From Mantamonas sphyraenae STR306 (Eukaryota; Protista; CRuMs), in assembly GCA_026936335.1 (NCBI GenBank), contig JAPMXV010000040.1:124001-188000 (forward strand): DNA of 64,000 bases, in the 5' to 3' direction. Shown in pieces: positions 5,519 through 15,642 of the stretch; within the stretch, counting starts at the first letter, position 1, and every line of letters begins with the position of its first letter. The notes under the pieces were generated by a model that saw only the letters and a program-made list of their open reading frames with translations, was not told where the DNA came from and ran no database searches. Made by a program: the position numbers and the translations under genes.

Positions 5519-5623
5519 TTGTATTGGCCACATGGCTGTGCACATGGCCTTCGGCTAGTCGATGCACCACATGGTGCGACAAGGTAGTATGGGTAAGCCT
5601 GTGGATTTGGATCTGTAGGCCGA
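5519..5623 (-). ncRNA. Candidate Fanzor omegaRNA scaffold
   Basis: 105-nt non-coding tail between the Fanzor stop and the element end with three consecutive hairpins, the last (GGCCAUGUG/CAUGUGGCC) pairing fully only on the Fanzor strand via G-U; the position matches known Fanzor/TnpB omegaRNA loci. Confidence 0.55.
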
Positions 5624-8600
5624 TCATTTGCCTATCCTTGGTCGCTGTACCCTTTGTCGCTTGGGAGCATGCTGTTGTGGTTGTGACCCACCCGAATCCT
5701 CTTCTTCCCCCACTTCCTCATCTCTTCTCTTCTTGCTTCTCTTGCCCGCCTTGTCTGCTGCCTTGCGTTGCACCTTCCTTCGTCGCTGTACCCTTTGTCG
5801 CTTGGGAGCATGCTGTTGTGGTTGTGACCCACCCGAATCCTCTTCTTCCCCCACTTCCTCATCTCTTCTCTTCTTGCTTCTCTCGCCTGCCTTGTCTGCT
5901 GCCTTGCGTTGCACCTTGATTTTCTTTGTTGGCTTCTCCATCCAGACGCCTGTGACAAAGAAGAGCATCTGCCGCCAGAAGATGCAGTGTGCAGAGCCTC
6001 GGTCTCTCTGAACTGCCTGGTGCAAGTTGTGCTCACCCTCGCCCTCCATCTCTTTGCATGCGTGCCGTTGTGCAAAGCGTTTGAGCTGCTTGGTGGCGTC
6101 AAACATGTTGGAGTCGATGTCCGACAGGCAGTGGCTGCTGCACGTCCGCCATCGCCCAAACTTCTCAGCGCCAAAGTCGTCCAAGTTGTCGACAGCGCTG
6201 CCACAGAAGCACTGCTGCGATGTATACCTCTCGTCTGCTGCAATGACCACAAAGTGGTTGGCCAGCATCTCCCGCATCTCCTGCGATTTCCCGCGTCCGC
6301 CAAACGTCTTTGTCGGCTGCAGCACAATCACTTGCTTCAGGCCCAGATGCGCGCGGAACCTGTGGATCACTGAGATCATCTCACGCACGCCTGCCATCCT
6401 TCGTTTGCGAAACGTCGCGTACTGCGCACGCATGTGCTTCGCATCCTTGTGCAAATCTTTTCCGAAGACACGTTGCTTGTACTCCTTCTTGAAGTCCGTG
6501 TACGACGCCAGCACTCGGTCCTGCCCTGCCTTGTGTGCCTGCACATCGTGGCTGTCCAGGGGCAAGGTGGCCACATACAGCTGGCCGTCCCGCACAAAGA
6601 TCGCCTCGACCCAGTCGCGTCCACGACCAGGGTCAATGCTGATCCACAGCACCTTGCGTGCATGCTCAAGGACTGCGTATCCATTCTTGGCAAAGGCCTT
6701 GACGTGCTCGACCAAGCCACGCTTCGGAACAGGGCAATCCGGAAAGCCAGGCGCGATCTGCTGGACGGCTTCCACCAGCGCGTCTGGCATGCCCGTTGGG
6801 TTCAGTACGGCAAGGGCAATCAGCGCGTTCTTCTTGGGGTCCAGCAGAAGGGGCAGGAGATGAGCCATCCTTGGCCTGATCAATGTTGCGAGGCTCGCCG
6901 GTGAAGGCAGGAGAGTGTGAACTCTTGGTGGCTGTAACACCAAGGCTCGCCTGTACTTCCCCTGAGCGGCGATTCCACCAGAGAGCATGCGCATGCTGCT
7001 GGCGCTGACGTTCTTCAGCAGGCACCTTGCGTTTTTCGTGCCAACGCCGCGCGTGAGCATGAGTATTGACTTCAGAGGCACGGTTTGCAGCGGCCGCTCT
7101 CCTGCCCAGTGTTGGACTGGCTGAGTATCCTCGTCATTGTTTTCTGGCATGCGACGAGCATACCGACACCGATACACTGCCTGCTTGAGCCATTTAGGGA
7201 GACTCGGGATGGCCTCATCCGTCAAAACCCACTCGCGTTCTTTCAGTGCATTCCACCAACCCGGGTTGGCGTCCGACTTGGCGTTCGGGTTGGCGTCTGG
7301 GGGGTCGTTTGGGTTGGCGTCCGGGTTGGCGTCCGGGTTGGCGTCCGGGTTGGCGTCCGGGTTGGCGTCTTGGGGGTCATCTGGGTTGGCGTCCGGGGGG
7401 TCATCTGGGTTGGCATTCCCGTTCGGCGTTCCATGTGCTTTCCACCTTGCTTCCATGGTGTTCACAAAGATCTTAAACGCGTACGTCTTGACGGAGTACG
7501 CGCCGAAGACGAACTGGCCGCCAATGTCAACCGGACCGGGAAACATCGCGTCAACACAGTCCAATGATGCTGCTGTCGATGCAATGGCGCGCTTTGCTTG
7601 TGTGCTTTTGAGATTGGTCTTCAGGTCGGGCTTGAGCATCACATCCAACAGCACAGACAACGCGTCCCGTTTGCCACGCACGTGCTTGCCGAGTTGATCC
7701 GAGAGACTTGTGCACACGTCCTCGTACGGGTCCCATGGAGATACACCTTGTGGGCGCTGCGCATCCACAGAGAGCTGCGCATCCACGGAGGACTCCTGCA
7801 CATCCATGGATGACTCCACATCCACAGAGGGCAGCACATCCACGGAGGACTCCTGCACATCCATGGATGACTCCACATCCACAGAGGGCAGCACATCCAC
7901 GGAGGACTCCTGCACATCCATGGATGACTCCACATCCACAGAGGGCAGCACATCCACGGAGGACTCCTGCACATCCATGGAGGGCCCCTGGACCTCCACT
8001 GAAGAGTGAGCAGCAGCCGCGGCAGCAGCCTTTGTGGCCTTGTGGATGGGCTGAGAGAACACAAAGTCACGTGTGTCCTTTGTCGACACCTGGTGGGTTT
8101 GGAACGCCTTCTTGGTCTTTGCATAGCTTGTACGCATGAGCGCGGCGACGCTGGCCACGATGGCGGACATGGGCAGCTCGCTGGGCGCCCCGTTCCTCAT
8201 CAGCGCCACGATCATCGGGTAGGCACACAAGGAGATGGCCGACTGCAGGCTGCCATTGAAGGCACGAGCGATGTCATTGGCCATGCTCGACACGGGCGCC
8301 TCCGAAAGATCCACCTTCAGACGCGTGACCATGAAGGAAAAGTCGAAACCATGTTGACCATCGCCCGCCTTCTGTATCCCGTTCCTGGTAAATCGTACAG
8401 ACTTGAGCTCCTCTGGGGTGTCCACGTTCTCCTTGAGTACCTTGAGGTTGTGCGTCGCGACTTTGCGCAGGGCCGTGAACGCTTCGAGCAGGTAGAAGGG
8501 CTTCACGCGGCTGTGAACTTCCACCATCCCGTCGACCACCATCCCGTCAATCATCGTCTGATCCTCTGTTGGCAGCTCCGCCTCGTCCAGCTCCGCCTCA

Positions 8601-11600
8601 TCCAGCTCCGCCTCATCCAGCTCCACCACATCCAGCTCCGCCTCATCCAGCTCCACCTCATCCAGCTCCGCCTCCTCCTGCTCGTCGCTGCCATCCACCG
8701 ATTGCTGGCGTCCATGGGGCGCAGTGAACCATGCAGTTGGGTCCTTTTTCACCTCTGGAATCACCTGGTCGACGAACCATGCTCGAAGCAAGGCTGTTTG
8801 CACGAGCATACAGTCCGCCAACGCTCCAAGAACGTCAGCCTCGCTCTTTCCAAGCCCACGCACGTTCGCCTCCAGCTTCAGATTCTTCTTGAGATCGCTC
8901 TGGTACTCAACAAAATCGTGCTCCCTGATCGCCGTGGCCGAAGGCAGCAGCGTGGTGAAATCAAACCCGTGCGGGATCCAGACGGGTCGCCCCCGCCGGC
9001 TTCCCTTCACGTCATCCTTGTCATAAAAAGCATCCTTGAGCGGCGTCAATGTCTCGCCCTCTGTTGTTGCCCCTGTCTGGAGCGCCACCTCGAACTGGTC
9101 CGCACGGGTCGCTGATGATAGCGTCGCAGGAGGGCGAAGCACCTGGCCATCCTTCCGCACGAGCACTGCCAGTTGTTTCTCGTGCCGTGCTGTGATCACA
9201 TGTGGAACAGATGTCCACCTTTCAACGGCCTCACGGGAACCGAGTGACTCCTCCTTGTTCTTTTTGAAGACAGATGCATCAAAGCCAGCAGGAATCTCCT
9301 CCACAAGCTGCGCGATTTCGGCTTCAGTTGCCGTCAGCAGGTAGGGCACCGCACAGTCCTCCTCGTCCGGCTCCGTGGCGTCCTCCTGGCCCACCATGGC
9401 CTTCGCAACATCCTTGTGAATGCCCTGTGCGAGATGGAATGGCAATTCCTGCACGTGCAGCGTCCCTTCCCGTGCACTGTGGCCACGCCCGAGCGTGTAC
9501 TCCATATGCATACGGGTGTCATCGGTGTTCTTCAGCTCTGGCTTGTGGTTGTAGGTGATGTTGACCTCAGTCAAGCCCAATGCTTGTGCCAACTCCTCCA
9601 CTGAGCGCGGTTTCGGCTTGGCCTGCGTACACAGTCTGCTGAACGACTCCATCACGGTCTGCGCGCGTTGATGATCGAGACCATGCACTCCTCCAAGTCG
9701 CTGGCAGACTGCTTGCGCCAAGGCGACGGCCGACATGGGACCATGGTCACGTTCGGTCTCCTCCAGACCCACCGTGAGCAGCTGCTTCCTCAGCGCTTCA
9801 GTCTCTTCTTCCTTCTTTTCGTCGTCACTCTTGATCGATGTTTTCCCTCGCGATTTGGTCTTTGTCGTCTTCCCCTTTTTGGGCTTCTTCTTGACTCCAT
9901 TGGCCCAGGTTATCAGTTTCCATGACGTCGCTTTGGCGTGCACTTTCTTCGTGTCCACCACATGGGCGTTGAAGATGTTGACAACCCGCAGCCCCGGAGC
10001 TGACCCATGGAGTGCGAGGCCAGCCATGAGACGCCCCTCGCGGTGGCACAGAACGACATCGTCCTCGGCCTTGACCTGGTTTTTGGCGGCCTGGTTTCTG
10101 ACGGCCTTATTTCTGACGGCCTGGTTTGTGACGAACTCGTCCAGTGACATCGTTGCCACTTGATGGGCAGCAAGGTAGTCGCGCATCACTGGCGCCAGGG
10201 TGGTGACAGTGGCACGAGCGGCGAACGCTCGCTGCTTGGCGTTGGAGAAGGTGTCCTGGGACGCAGCTGCACTCAGTTGCTGGTAGAAGCGTTGCAGCTC
10301 GGCTGGCGTGGCTCGACCTGCAAACAGTGCGGCTGTGGACACGACGTCGTCCACAACCACAACCGTGCGAGTCGAAAACAGCTTGCTCAATCTGGGCAAC
10401 ACAGTGTCGAGGATCGTGGTGACCCATTGCCAGGCAGAGGTGAACGTGGCGGGATGCGTGATGGTATGGTCGGAGAGGTGCAAGTAGCGAGCGGCGAGGC
10501 TGCTGAGGCCAACGTACACTGCGGCAAGGCGGGTTCCCCCCGACCCAGCGACGCCACGCTGCACACCACCCTCCACGCCCTCGTTGACAGCAGAGTCAGC
10601 CAAAGGTGGGGGTTGCCAGTTGTCGTTCAACACGTCCAGATACTTGGCGGTCACTGGCGTCTTGTCGCCGGCTGAAGTCGGAAGCTGTGTCAGCTGCCCT
10701 GCTGCCGATGTCTGCGTAGCGGGCACACGGTTGAAACGGAGCCCACGCACAGATGCGGTTGACCCAGCAACCTGCACCCGAGTCGAAGGGGGCCTTCCTT
10801 GAGGCGCTGGCGTTGTCCCTCGAGCCCGTGCAGCGTGCGCGTACAAACGCCTTCTAGCAGCTGAGGTGGAGCTCTCCTTGCTCTGCATCACAACTCGCGG
10901 GCCCTTGATGGCCATGGGCTTGCGGAACACGTTTGATTTGTTGTCGAGAGCCACGGTGCCCATGGCAGACGGCAACGTCCAATCCTCTTCCGGTTGAGAC
11001 TTGAGGAAAACCAGCCTGAAACCCGTGGGCGCACGCTCAGGCGCGGGCCACTCCTCGTCAGTCAGCTGCTGCGCAAGGTCATTGTACACACGGAATTTCC
11101 CTTCCGCCAGTGGAAGCCATGCCGTGTAGTGGGCCCCTTTGAAACAGAGCACCCCGAAGGGCACTTGCTGGTTTTGCTCCGGCAGGCCCTCGCCCACACG
11201 CTGCTGGAGTGCTCCTCGCTCCGCAAGCTTTGCAACCCCTGCGGCGTCCGCTGGCGGGGGGGTACCACCATGCAACATCTGGATGGGGAAGTCAGAGTCG
11301 AATGCGACCTCGAGGCGGTGATGGAAATCTGCCGAGTCACCCCACAGGTCGTCGCCCCCCGCGAGCGCTGTAGCGGCAAGGAAGAGATCGTTGCAGGCCA
11401 CGGCATACATGTCGTCGTCACAGAACATGGCCATGCACCAGGTCTGCCGCAGAAGGGCCGTGTTGACGACGCTGGGGTCTGTGTGTGCCGGCGCAAAGAA
11501 GAGGGGGCGGGTTAGCACTCTCCTGTCAGCGGGATTGAGTGCGGTTTGAGCTTACCTTGCTCCCCAGGCTCAGGCCCCAACTGGGTCGGGTCGTTCCCGC

Positions 11601-11931
11601 CTGTCGTTGCCTCCAGCCATCCGAGAAGGTACTTGCACATGGACGTTCGCAGAGGTGGAGAGGCGCGCACAGCAGTTGAATAGGACGACACCCAGCATGC
11701 CACCTTCGCGGTGTTGACACCGTTGACGTTGGCGTACCCTTGCATGTCACCTTCGGGCTCGCCCAGATTTGCAGGTAGTCTTGTTCGTGGTGTGTACAGG
11801 GAAATCGACTCGTTGTCGGCCACACAGGTCGGACACACCAGCGACACGTGAGATGGGGCTGACGTTACCCAGCACACCATGAGCACTGTCTCGTTGTTGC
11901 AGCTATGGTGCTGACACTTCAGAATCGACAT
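5624..11931 (-). CDS. Giant Fanzor (TnpB-family RNA-guided RuvC nuclease) with N-terminal USP-like protease and PIN-like region; exons 11931-11556 and 11478-5624, ~2076 aa
   Basis: RuvC-I WISIDPG (D 6634-6632), RuvC-II AADERYTSQQC (E 6232-6230), Zn ribbon CFCG...RTCSSHC, RuvC-III VQRDRGSAHCI (D 6004-6002); phase-compatible GTAAG...CTAAC...CAG intron. Confidence 0.85.
5641..5917. repeat. Near-perfect 141-bp tandem duplication (5641-5776, 5782-5917) encoding a basic NLS-like tail
   Basis: Two copies of KVQRKAADKAG[KE]RSKKRRDEEVGEEEDSGGSQPQQHAPKRQRVQR. Confidence 0.95.
7262..7416. repeat. 12-bp-based coding minisatellite (ANPD repeats) inside Fanzor
   Basis: Repeated gggttggcgtcc units. Confidence 0.9.
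7762..7981. repeat. 57-bp coding tandem repeat (SMDVQESSVDVLPSVDVES) inside Fanzor
   Basis: catccatgga recurs at 7801, 7858, 7915 and 7972. Confidence 0.95.
8573..8674. repeat. 15-bp coding repeat (ELDEA) inside Fanzor
   Basis: About seven cagctcc(g/a)cctcatc units. Confidence 0.9.
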
Positions 11932-11996
11932 TCTACACTCTTGAAACTATTGACTCCACCCGCGCACTTGGGCCAGCCGCCGCTTTTCAGAGCAGG

Positions 11997-12434
11997 TCAG
12001 TTGTCAAACGTCAAGCCTCGCGCCTCGCTGTCAAATGCCGCAGAAAGCTTGTTGCCCTCTCCGACGCCCCCGAGCACTTGCACACAGTTCACAAGCCCCA
12101 TCCTACACAGTCCTACGCACATCACTTGCTGCTCTGGAAGGGCCCCGCGCACGCCGTTGCCGACGAGAACATCGAAACGCACGTTGGCCGTTTGCCGGCA
12201 CAGAGGGTTGAAATCCTGCAGTTCACACTCACTGAGGAGCACAGTGGCCCATGTAACGATGTTGAGGAACAGAGGGAACAGAGCCTGGACCTGGACGACC
12301 AGGAGGGCGAGGAAGGTGGGGTGCTGCTTTCGCAGGCGTTGCACGTCACAATAGAGTCTCGGCTGTTTTGTACCTGGCAAACTCAATCCAGCAGGAGATA
12401 GATCACCGAGGAGGGGTTGAAAGGTAGGAGGCAT
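11997..12434 (-). CDS. Possible small accessory ORF of the transposon (~145 aa, MPPTFQPLL...), unknown
   Basis: ATG at 12434, same strand as both element genes, stops 65 bp upstream of the Fanzor ATG; no recognisable motif. Confidence 0.35.
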   Translation of the reverse strand: MPPTFQPLLGDLSPAGLSLPGTKQPRLYCDVQRLRKQHPTFLALLVVQVQALFPLFLNIVTWATVLLSECELQDFNPLCRQTANVRFDVLVGNGVRGALPEQQVMCVGLCRMGLVNCVQVLGGVGEGNKLSAAFDSEARGLTFDN

Positions 12435-13248
12435 GGCCACAACGCCAAGAAAAATTGATGAGTGGCTAGAAGTTGCCGCGTCGTCGCGCTGCGTCGTCGC
12501 CTCTACATGCAAATGTGGGTGTGATGTGCTGTCCCCGTTTTCAGTATGCTCCCTGTACGACGCCCGATTGCCCACCAAACCGGCAGACGCAGCGCTGGGC
12601 ACCGCACGGGCAAAAGAGTGATGCTTCGTTGCCGTCGCGTGACCAGCAAGTGGCACACGTCCACAGGAACCAAACAGAGTCAAGTGGAAAGGCTGTGCGA
12701 CTACACCAAGACACTACAGCAGGAAGCGCCCCTTGCCGTGGGGCCTTGGCCGTCCTCTACGACACAAAGAACCGCCTTGTCAGGCTACGTGAAAATCAGG
12801 TTGTGAATCCACGGTATCGGGCTTCACACGCTGTCTCATGGTGTTTGTAGATACATATTGGGACATGGGTCTGCTGAGGGGAGACGCATGTGCACAATAA
12901 TTGTACTGGGTGTCAAGGGGTGCATCTCAACGGCGTCAACCTGCATGCTGCTCCTCCCACGGGTGTTGGAGCCAAAACCAGAGGACCATGTGGCATGATG
13001 ACTGTATGCAGGCGTTCCATGGATTGTTTATGCACGGGGCGCATGGTACTGTTCGCAAAGCCCGGTTGCAACGGGGTCGCTCCTGACTGAGGAGACTGCT
13101 GCCAGGGGAGGTGGGCACTATCCACGCCTTGTAGGTGCCCCACTTAGCCCTCCCTGCTTCTCTTTGAGCCCCCCCGACACAAAGATGGCAATGGGAGTAC
13201 GGGTTTTTCAGCACCAGCGTGCGCCCTGAATGGCTACGCTCCACGATC

Positions 13249-14268
13249 CTACATGCGGTACCCGCAGTGATGGACCCAGTTCCTCACATCAGCAGCCGTA
13301 ACATGCCCCAATGCAGTACAGATCGCCGCGAAAGTGCAAATGTCCACTCGATGAAATTCCCTGCGGAGGACCGCCTTGAACTTGCTAAACATGAGCTCGA
13401 TGGGGTTGAGCGTAGGTGTGTAAGGCGGGAGAAACTCGACATCCACCCCATACCAGGTGCACAGCTGGCGTACAGCATCGCCTTTGTGGATGGAGCAGTT
13501 GTCCATGACCAGAACTGTTTGGCGGCAATCTCGCATGCGGGGCAAGAGGTCTTGCTCCAGGAACTCCATAAACAGCTGCCGGTTGTATGACCCCTCTCGC
13601 ATTGTGTACGCTACCAGTGGCGAGCGCCCACCGGTGCTGATGGCCGCCAGCACGCTGATGCGCTTTTGCTTGGGATGGTTCTCCACAACGACCGCTGGTT
13701 GCCCACGTTTCGCACGACCATATCTCCTGTAGCACACTCTGTTGTTCACTGCAGTTTCGTCCAAGAAGACCACGTTCGGCGCTCGGAACACACCGCGAAT
13801 CCTCATTGCTCGAGTAAACTCGCGTGTGCGCGCCACGGTGGATTCCCTGAACCGTTGCTTGGCGATAGCACTCACCTTCTTGCGAGTCAGTCCCATGCGC
13901 GCACAAGAACGGCGAATTGTGGACAGAGATACCACCTTGTTGCGATGAAGAGCAACGGCTACTTGCAACTCGTCCAGGTACAGTCGCGGATCATCGGCCA
14001 CCTGTTCAGCAATGAATTGGTCGTCATTGGCATCCAGGAGACGCCTGAACGGTGGTTGGGCCACAAGAGGGCGTACATGGCCCATGGCTCGGTGTTGACG
14101 TACAATCTTGGACACGACGGAAGGAGACACACCGAGAGCCTCCGCTGTGCCTCTGCACGAAGGACGCAAGCTGGATTGGTAGTGAAAGAGAATGCATTCT
14201 CGTTTGTCCGCCGAAAAGGCTTTGCCGTGGATGTATGACCCACCCGTTGCATTCGTTTTGACGGTCAT
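13249..14268 (-). CDS. IS630/Tc1-like DD34E transposase with paired-like HTH N-terminus (339 aa)
   Basis: VVFLDET, VLVMDNCSIH, FLPPYTPTLNPIE with 34 residues between the second D and E; HTH segments TAEALGVSPSVVSKIV and VSLSTIRR; uninterrupted frame from ATG 14268. Confidence 0.95.
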   Translation of the reverse strand: MTVKTNATGGSYIHGKAFSADKRECILFHYQSSLRPSCRGTAEALGVSPSVVSKIVRQHRAMGHVRPLVAQPPFRRLLDANDDQFIAEQVADDPRLYLDELQVAVALHRNKVVSLSTIRRSCARMGLTRKKVSAIAKQRFRESTVARTREFTRAMRIRGVFRAPNVVFLDETAVNNRVCYRRYGRAKRGQPAVVVENHPKQKRISVLAAISTGGRSPLVAYTMREGSYNRQLFMEFLEQDLLPRMRDCRQTVLVMDNCSIHKGDAVRQLCTWYGVDVEFLPPYTPTLNPIELMFSKFKAVLRREFHRVDICTFAAICTALGHVTAADVRNWVHHCGYRM

Positions 14269-14322
14269 TTTTGTTTTGCGTTGCTGACCACAGCGCGCGG
14301 AACGCCACAATACAGCAACCCA

Positions 14323-15642
14323 ATGAGCAGTTCGGGAGGGGTCAAACGCACCTTTTCGTCCATTTCGACACCCAACTCACCCGCGTTGCACTTTGAAGTG
14401 ACAGCAAGGTGGCGCAAGGCGCGTGTGGGGCGGTTGTTCCTGCCGAGTGTGGCTGCAGAGACGCCGCTGTTCATGCCTGTGGGCACGCAGGGGAGCATCA
14501 AAGGAATGACCACGCGGCAGTTGGAAGACTTGGACTGCCGAATCATCCTGGGCAACACGTACCATCTGGGCCACCGGCCTGGGGCCGATCTGGTGGACGA
14601 ACTGGGAGGCCTGCACACGTTTATGAACTGGAAGCGAGGCCTGCTGACAGACTCGGGTGGCTTCCAAATGGTGTCTCTGCTTGACCTGGCGCACATCACA
14701 GAAGAGGGGGTCCTGTTCAGGTCGCCGCACAACGGGGAGGAGATGATGCTGACGCCCGAGAAGAGCATCCAGCTGCAGAACGAGATTGGAGCCAACATCA
14801 TCATGCAGTTGGACGATGTGGTGTCGTCCAAGGTGCGTGGGAAGCGTGTGGAGGAGGCCATGGAACGCAGCACGCGGTGGTTGGACAGATGCATGGACGC
14901 GCACGAGAAGAAGCAGACGCAGAACCTGTTCCCCATTGTGCAGGGGGGACTGGACGAGGCTTTGCGTGCACGTTCGTTGGAAGAGCTGATTGCACGGGAC
15001 GCACCCGGGTATGCCATTGGCGGACTGAGTGGAGGGGAGGCGAAGGAGGACACGGCAAGGTGCATCGACCAGTGCACAAGCAAGCTTCCAAACGACAAGC
15101 CCCGGTACGCCATGGGCATTGGGTATGCCATCGACTTGGTTGTGTTTTCGGCCCTGGGCGTGGATATGTTTGACTGTGTGTTCCCCACGCGTACGGCGCG
15201 CTTCGGGCGTGCGCTGCTGATGTCTGGGGCCATCAATCTCAAGTCGTCGCAGTTTGCGGATGACTTTGAACCCATCGACGCAGAGTGTGGCTGCATGGTG
15301 TGCCAACAGTACACGCGTGCATACGTGCATGCCCTGGCAAAGGGCGAGGGAGCTGGCCTGCAGTTGATCACCTACCACAACATTGCCTTTCAGATGCGCC
15401 TCATGCGCACCATCCGTCATCACATCACCGAGGGTACCTTTGTCTCCTGGGTTTGCTGGTTTGTGCGCCAGCAGTACGGCGAGGACCCGGAGCAGTTTCC
15501 AACGTGGGTTGTGGATGCGCTGGCCACCGCTGGCATGGATGTGGTCAACCAGTGCGAGATTGATGAGGATGATGAGCAGGAGGGTGATGAGGAGGGTGAC
15601 AAGAAGGAGGGTGGTGATGACATGGAGCAGGAGACAATGTAG
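14323..15642 (+). CDS. QTRT1: Queuine tRNA-ribosyltransferase catalytic subunit
   Basis: TPLFMPVGTQG, ILGNTYHL, LTDSGGFQMVSL, GVDMFDCVFPTRTARFG, Zn site CGCMVC...H. Confidence 0.95.
   Translation: MSSSGGVKRTFSSISTPNSPALHFEVTARWRKARVGRLFLPSVAAETPLFMPVGTQGSIKGMTTRQLEDLDCRIILGNTYHLGHRPGADLVDELGGLHTFMNWKRGLLTDSGGFQMVSLLDLAHITEEGVLFRSPHNGEEMMLTPEKSIQLQNEIGANIIMQLDDVVSSKVRGKRVEEAMERSTRWLDRCMDAHEKKQTQNLFPIVQGGLDEALRARSLEELIARDAPGYAIGGLSGGEAKEDTARCIDQCTSKLPNDKPRYAMGIGYAIDLVVFSALGVDMFDCVFPTRTARFGRALLMSGAINLKSSQFADDFEPIDAECGCMVCQQYTRAYVHALAKGEGAGLQLITYHNIAFQMRLMRTIRHHITEGTFVSWVCWFVRQQYGEDPEQFPTWVVDALATAGMDVVNQCEIDEDDEQEGDEEGDKKEGGDDMEQETM

Follow-up and report, generated by a model that had tools for sequence, protein, structure and literature searches.

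The window analyzed here is a 64,000-nt stretch of the genome of Mantamonas sphyraenae STR306 (contig JAPMXV010000040.1, positions 124,001 to 188,000); all coordinates below are positions within it. This protist belongs to the deep-branching CRuMs group, and most of its genes have a single exon (PMC10492846). The window contains a whole transposon of ~8.8 kb on the minus strand (5519..14310). The second gene of this element appears to be spliced once and to encode one protein of 2,076 aa, which from N- to C-terminus would comprise a Cys/His zinc-binding segment, a protease of the fingerless ubiquitin-specific protease (USP) type, a long middle region, and the RuvC nuclease of a Fanzor. Fanzors are the RNA-guided nucleases of eukaryotes. 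The explanation that we favor, at better than even confidence, is that a fingerless USP-like isopeptidase of the ubiquitin family has been fused to the Fanzor and serves the survival of the element itself.

The genome (25,061,354 bases in 78 contigs) was searched for copies of the element; copies are named by contig, and the window copy is C40. Eleven largely intact copies and a decayed one (C34) were found. The 11 readable copies form three subfamilies (C40-like, C57/C68, and C52/C71), and their exon 2 proteins are 46-56% identical between subfamilies over the first 1,150 residues. Coding exon 1 (11556..11931, minus strand), supported by copy comparison and by the ratio of nonsynonymous to synonymous substitution rates (dN/dS), has 125 codons plus one base and carries the Cys/His-rich segment, the Cys box, and the first thumb helices. 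It is followed by a 77-nt phase-1 spliceosomal intron (11479..11555, minus strand) with a GTAAG donor and a CAG acceptor, conserved in position among the copies, and by coding exon 2 (5624..11478, minus strand), which encodes the rest of the protease, a middle region of ~1,400 aa, and the Fanzor RuvC. The join yields a GAC codon (Asp126) and continues in the frame of the long open reading frame (ORF). A first-pass annotation had proposed this intron and the in-phase join, and its coordinates were right.

The intron signature alone is common: seven sites were present in the window, versus 17.8 expected in shuffled sequences. A signature in a single copy was accordingly rejected as evidence, and because it is not rare the case for the intron rests on copy comparison. 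All 11 readable copies, from the three subfamilies, share the same intron position and phase, a GTAA donor, a CTGAC element 44-65 nt upstream of the acceptor, a CACAG acceptor, and an Asp codon at the junction, at intron lengths of 74, 75, 77, 79, 92, 94, 96, and 102 nt. The linker ahead of the donor varies freely. DNA similarity between subfamilies ends before the donor and restarts at the acceptor. Intron retention would cause a stop or a frameshift in every copy except C17, whose 75-nt intron (L021:8227-8302) is free of stops; there, a full-length protein is possible with or without splicing. Between subfamilies, exon 1 had a dN/dS of 0.17-0.36 and the portion of exon 2 that encodes the protease one of 0.12-0.36; dS was 0.7-2.6 and partly saturated. 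Both exons are evidently under purifying selection, the status of exon 1 as real coding sequence is supported, and the intron is almost certainly spliced out in cells. The branch point had been assigned to GCTAAC. This sequence is present, but only in the C40 and C58 copies, and it was rejected as a certain branch site. Of the two candidates in the window copy, CTGAC (11529-11525) and CTAAC (11515-11511), the former has a counterpart in every copy and appears to be the better one.

The joined exons bring together the conserved residues of a putative cysteine protease. The Cys box (11695..11715, minus strand) contains Asn73 as candidate oxyanion-hole residue and Cys79 as candidate nucleophile, followed by Trp80, and all three are invariant. 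The pattern Asn73-x5-Cys79-Trp is that of a USP Cys box, with oxyanion Asn, nucleophile Cys, an aromatic, and small residues. The His box (11078..11131, minus strand) contains His242 followed by Tyr or Phe, Asn258 at His+16 (Asp in C52/C71), and Asp259 at His+17. In the aligned copies His242, Trp246, and Asp259 are invariant and the residue after His242 is always aromatic, which corresponds to the USP arrangement His-aromatic ... aromatic-Asn/Asp-Asp. This pattern, composed after the motif was known, had a single match in the six-frame translation of the window and none in 200 shuffles. The first-pass annotation had placed the catalytic Cys at 11697-11695, His at 11131-11129, and Asp at 11080-11078, and the codons are as it claimed. 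It had chosen Asp259 as third triad residue; by the spacing in USPL1 this would be Asn258, and either residue could serve. The Cys/His-rich segment that it had noted near the N-terminus (11824..11916, minus strand) has six positions invariant in the copy alignment (C6, C11, C20, H28, C33, and C36) and is a probable zinc-binding segment.

The distance from Cys79 to His242 is 163 aa in C40 and 154-189 aa among the copies. A low-complexity loop between the two boxes (11165..11281, minus strand) shows 8% three-way identity versus 51-58% on either side, and its length varies by ~30 aa; it appears to lie where USPs carry their fingers subdomain. Most of the variation in length falls in this loop. 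CxxC pairs are absent from the stretch that separates the two boxes, which leaves hardly any space for USP fingers. The low-confidence structural models contained no fingers sheet, and in either model the loop region had one short strand. The sequence GEQDPS had been read as a QQD-like box. This reading failed: the Gln is replaced by Lys in C57/C68 and by Leu in C52/C71, and only Asp-Pro is kept.

Homology and structure searches were performed with the separate exons and with the C17 copy, which reads naturally through its intron; the read-through adds 25 intron-coded residues, which possibly lowered model quality. ESM Atlas features placed USP-like clusters first (0.83-0.88, lead level only), and the Atlas shape search also placed USP clusters first (TM ~0.3). 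Both AlphaFold2 models showed helices followed by a beta-sheet bearing the His and Asn/Asp residues, and in model 2 Cys79 lay, with low confidence, at the start of a helix, within its first turn. The top Foldseek match of both models was TssM (E 0.059 and 0.024, TM ~0.23), followed by USPL1, USP2, USP54, USP14, USP15, PLpro, Josephin, VTD, and C39, a list dominated by the papain clan. The USPL1 match of model 1 covered the His-box region (probability 0.93-0.94, 21% identity, ~97 columns, E 0.07); a likeness of this region to USPL1 had been suggested before from the sequence and emerged here independently. VIA-align gave Z scores of 5.1-5.2 for USP14, USP7, and PLpro over ~80-125 residues. A viral structure library was led by unnamed entries and by torovirus and enterovirus polyproteins, the latter presumably matched through their papain-like proteases.

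A number of results weigh against the assignment to a protease. A profile search of 1.84 billion representatives revealed no sequence relatives outside the genome, and no outside relative was found by word-index searches with exon 2 region 1-175 and the C17 read-through copy. Protease relatives were absent from PDB sequences and from viral and metagenome contigs, and the protease region had no family match in Pfam, PHROGs, or NCBIfam. Both models were poor, with a mean predicted local distance difference test score (pLDDT) of 42.6 and 44.4; in both, the Cys segment had a pLDDT <50 and its docking was not confident. Foldseek returned no match at E 0.001 or better with either model. VIA-align Z scores of ~5 lie within the library background and were tied with unrelated helical proteins in a wide library. 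The structural matches mainly cover the exon 2 half. The Cys-box pattern by itself had 12 matches in the window and has little weight alone.

Membership of the domain in the USP or USPL1 family was rejected. PF00443 and PF13423 gave no match above cut-off with either exon or the C17 read-through, and the locus was absent from genome-wide scans with both models; PF00443 does detect many host USP genes, which showed no sequence link to the transposon domain. PF15499 (USPL1) did not match the exons or the read-through, and its genome scan was blank too, but its control gave no signal. The absence of PF00443 and PF15499 matches, the lack of fingers, the short Cys-to-His distance, and the unconserved QQD box exclude the domain from both USP and USPL1. 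Of the earlier suggestion of a USP/USPL1-like protease, the likeness thus survives in the papain-clan and USP-type motifs and in the lists from four structure libraries, headed by USP-like enzymes, but the membership does not. Each piece of evidence is weak but consistent, and the domain probably has a papain/USP fold with an active triad. The catalytic set would be Cys79, His242, and Asn258 or Asp259, with Asn73 in the oxyanion hole.

One of the closest known parallels is TssM of Burkholderia pseudomallei, a fingerless USP-type deubiquitinase with the triad Cys308-His442-Asp457 and spacings of 134 (Cys-His) and 15 (His-Asp) (PMC10719079). It is the top Foldseek match of both models of the transposon domain, which resembles it in its short Cys-to-His distance, lack of fingers, and aromatic after His, and in a His-to-acid spacing of 16-17 versus 15. 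However, the TssM matches are not significant (E 0.02-0.06, TM ~0.23), and TssM has an Ig-like domain and is secreted by bacteria as an effector, whereas the present domain belongs to a eukaryotic transposon, follows an N-terminal zinc segment, and is fused to a nuclease. USPL1 (Peptidase C98) is SUMO-specific and has the triad Cys236-His456-Asp472, with spacings of 220 and 16, and fingers with a four-Cys zinc site that are needed for SUMO binding (PMC8983731). The spacing of 16 from His to the third residue is common to both, and over the palm region USPL1 had the highest local probability (0.94) and identity (21%) of the structural matches; in contrast, there is no PF15499 match, no four-Cys fingers between the boxes, a Cys-to-His distance of 163 versus 220, and no identifiable counterpart of the SUMO-binding residues. 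Canonical USPs (Peptidase C19, PF00443; USP7, USP14, CYLD) share the order Asn-Cys ... His ... Asn/Asp-Asp and a helical thumb followed by a beta-sheet palm, but the transposon domain lacks an HMM (hidden Markov model) match to them, has its QQD box reduced to Asp, and is without fingers.

If the domain is a protease, its substrate is likely to be of the ubiquitin family, be it ubiquitin, SUMO, or NEDD8. Cleavage would most likely occur after the Gly-Gly end of ubiquitin or of a ubiquitin-like tag. In eukaryotic families of deubiquitinases, an aromatic next to the catalytic His is described as a gatekeeper for Gly-Gly (PMC10719079). Helitrons provide a precedent: their transposon-borne VTD and OTU deubiquitinases are proven, and have been proposed to prevent proteasomal loss of transposition proteins (PMC9741609). 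The two systems are alike in having a cysteine isopeptidase fused into the large protein of a transposon; they differ in protease family, in transposon class, and in the partner, which in Helitrons is RepHel and not an RNA-guided nuclease. We favor a ubiquitin-family isopeptidase because of this His+1 gatekeeper, the specificity of fingerless TssM, and the Helitron VTD precedent.

The strongest competitor is self-processing. Picornaviral L protease and nidoviral papain-like proteases cut themselves off precursors, and the domain could likewise be a leader protease that cleaves itself from the 2,076-aa precursor and thereby releases or activates the Fanzor, with removal of tags absent or secondary. 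Its N-terminal position on a polyprotein-sized product fits this role, as do an Atlas feature match to Peptidase_C28 (0.83) and the presence of PLpro among the structural matches. The usual ubiquitin-binding surface is gone with the fingers, and the linker after the domain is less conserved (27% three-way identity). However, no conserved Gly-Gly is found in the 260 residues past the domain, so that a conserved self-cleavage site of this kind was rejected; USP-type matches rank above leader proteases; and TssM is fingerless yet ubiquitin-specific (PMC10719079). We regard a self-cleaving leader as unlikely.

The domain could also be spliced as described and yet be catalytically inactive, a zinc-binding or scaffold domain with motifs that resemble, or derive from, the papain fold. 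No homology or fold match is significant, ten invariant Cys/His within the first 160 aa make one conserved Cys-Trp unremarkable, and Cys79 is not confidently placed in the models. On the other hand, the whole putative triad, the oxyanion Asn, and the aromatic at His+1 are retained although overall identity is only 51-67%, the His-box pattern occurs just once in the window, and independent searches converge on one protease clan; we consider an inactive domain quite unlikely. It is very improbable that exon 1 is dispensable, with the intron retained or exon 1 encoding a separate small protein, and that a short C39-like protease starting from a downstream Met combines the His box with Cys145 or Cys154: although Cys140, Cys145, and Cys154 are invariant and C39 peptidases are among the weak fold matches, the intron phase and splice signals are kept over saturating divergence, Cys154 lies mid-helix in both models, and only C17 tolerates retention.

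The likely role of a fingerless USP-like isopeptidase fused to the Fanzor would be counter-defense. Tags may be stripped from the Fanzor ribonucleoprotein or from the transposase, which would then escape degradation; the cellular target named here is a guess. Because the protease is tethered to an RNA-guided nuclease, tags on chromatin near the cut may possibly be removed too. A more far-reaching form of this idea, which we consider unlikely, is that the protein acts in nature as a deubiquitinase or deSUMOylase guided by RNA: the Fanzor would be directed to a DNA site by its omegaRNA, and the fused protease would strip ubiquitin-family marks there. If this were true, removal of marks from chromatin or repair factors would steer repair of the break toward copying the element back, or would lift silencing, and a eukaryotic transposon would have evolved a programmable eraser of chromatin tags.

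The fusion partner has the hallmarks of a Fanzor. Its RuvC center (6002..6634, minus strand) comprises D1741 (6634-6632), E1875 (6232-6230), a C4 zinc ribbon, and D1951 (6004-6002), and none of the ten undecayed copies that were read in their 3' part has lost any of these motifs. The published Fanzor/TnpB motif is D-X(125,275)-[TS]-[TS]-X-X-C4 zinc finger-X(5,50)-RD (PMC3627910); here D1741 is followed ~136 aa on by Thr-Ser, four Cys, and Arg-Asp1951. In the rearranged RuvC-II of Fanzors the canonical Glu is replaced by Pro or Gly and an alternative Glu occurs further along (PMC10530073). By inspection, the canonical strand of the present protein ends in Gln-Pro, and Glu1875 follows ~30 aa later, just ahead of the zinc ribbon. 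PF07282 matched below its cut-off (E 0.037), and in the Atlas the RuvC region scored 0.95 to Cas12f1-like/TNB clusters, which come from giant viruses and eukaryotes. The protein resembles Fanzor1 of Tc1/mariner elements in the D...TS..C4 zinc finger...RD motif, the rearranged RuvC-II Glu, the presence of introns, the placement at the 3' end of the element, and the TA duplication (PMC3627910, PMC10530073), and differs from it in having 2,076 aa and an N-terminal protease. Such a length is several times the usual Fanzor size. Open frames of 1,750-2,060 aa in most copies indicate that the fusion has been maintained.

In the RuvC region (5519-7340) the subfamilies share 94-99% identity, as against 46-56% in their N-terminal halves (8000-11931), and in the C57 copy the sequence changes from C68-type to C40-type at about position 10840; such mosaic copies suggest recombination or homing among copies. 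A non-coding 3' end (5519..5623, minus strand; 96-99% identical among copies, folding z-score -1.74) is the predicted omegaRNA scaffold. The Fanzor ORF is enlarged by in-frame tandem repeats at 5635-5916, 7249-7428, 7757-8005, and 8558-8698, with units of 141, 12, 57, and 15 nt; the C-terminal 141-nt unit is Lys/Arg-rich and could provide nuclear localization signals. A conserved block at 9790-10460 (exon 2 residues 331-620, 42% three-way identity) had no Pfam match, and its strand-acidic pattern is reminiscent of PIN/FEN1 nucleases. About 20 other loci resemble the RuvC distantly, at 21-30% identity, and most of them lie in open frames of 1,500-2,250 aa; they are on contigs C1, C2, C18, C22, C29, C30, C34, C41, C42, C43, C45, C50, C51, C52, C54, and C56. 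These are probably other giant Fanzor families. The exon 2 protease profile had no match at these loci, and the presence of this particular protease there was rejected. A word-index search of proteins of 1,070-3,400 aa found no others with the same RuvC.

The element as a whole has the features of the IS630/Tc1/mariner group: a DDE transposase, TA target duplication, and terminal inverted repeats, the last of just 4 bp (TTGT/ACAA). The transposase gene (13249..14268, minus strand) is of the IS630/Tc1 type (PF13358, E 4.9e-27; NF033545, 126 bits at a cut-off of 100). The boundaries, taken from copy comparison, are TTG...CAA flanked by a 2-bp target duplication (TA in the window). In eight of the nine copies with both ends read the duplication is identical on both sides (TA in six, TG in C14, and TT in C68); the exception is C57, whose flanking 2 bp are mismatched. 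The left flanks of ten copies read GTA up to and including the duplication, or once GTG and once GTT, and GTA is a candidate target-adjacent motif (TAM) for the Fanzor. A region of ~550 bp upstream of exon 1 (11938..12486) is present only in the C40 subfamily and is lacking in C57/C68, C52/C71, and C34, where a conserved upstream motif lies close to the exon 1 ATG. This region holds most of an orphan ORF (11997-12683), which was ruled out as a protease homologue (E 28). In the C52 and C71 copies (L030 and L031) the transposase gene is largely missing, yet long open protease-Fanzor frames (1,933 and 1,746 aa) persist; these copies are non-autonomous elements still carrying the fusion. The C17 (L021) and C41 (L022/L012) copies have a common left flank and different right flanks, which implies a joint duplication or rearrangement of the element and host DNA. 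In the window, a divergent host gene (14281-15642, plus strand) that reads like a queuine tRNA-ribosyltransferase starts no more than ~15 bp from the left end of the element (14310-14323).

Term searches of the literature, incomplete in coverage and including PMC3627910, PMC10530073, and PMC10711439, revealed no fusion of a Fanzor with a protease; in the same kind of search, the eukaryotic adaptations given for Fanzors were introns and nuclear localization signals, not fused enzymes. Fanzors are known from Tc1/mariner elements, introns are known in Fanzors, and deubiquitinases are known from transposons, but their combination appears to be undescribed. Until now, a bacterial effector has been the only structurally known case of a fingerless USP-like enzyme (PMC10719079). 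With no detectable relative outside the genome, the protease domain would be a new branch of these enzymes, and it is small and amenable to standard probes. That three subfamilies keep the protease domain under purifying selection and in one frame with an intact RuvC points to handling of the host ubiquitin system as part of how the element survives.

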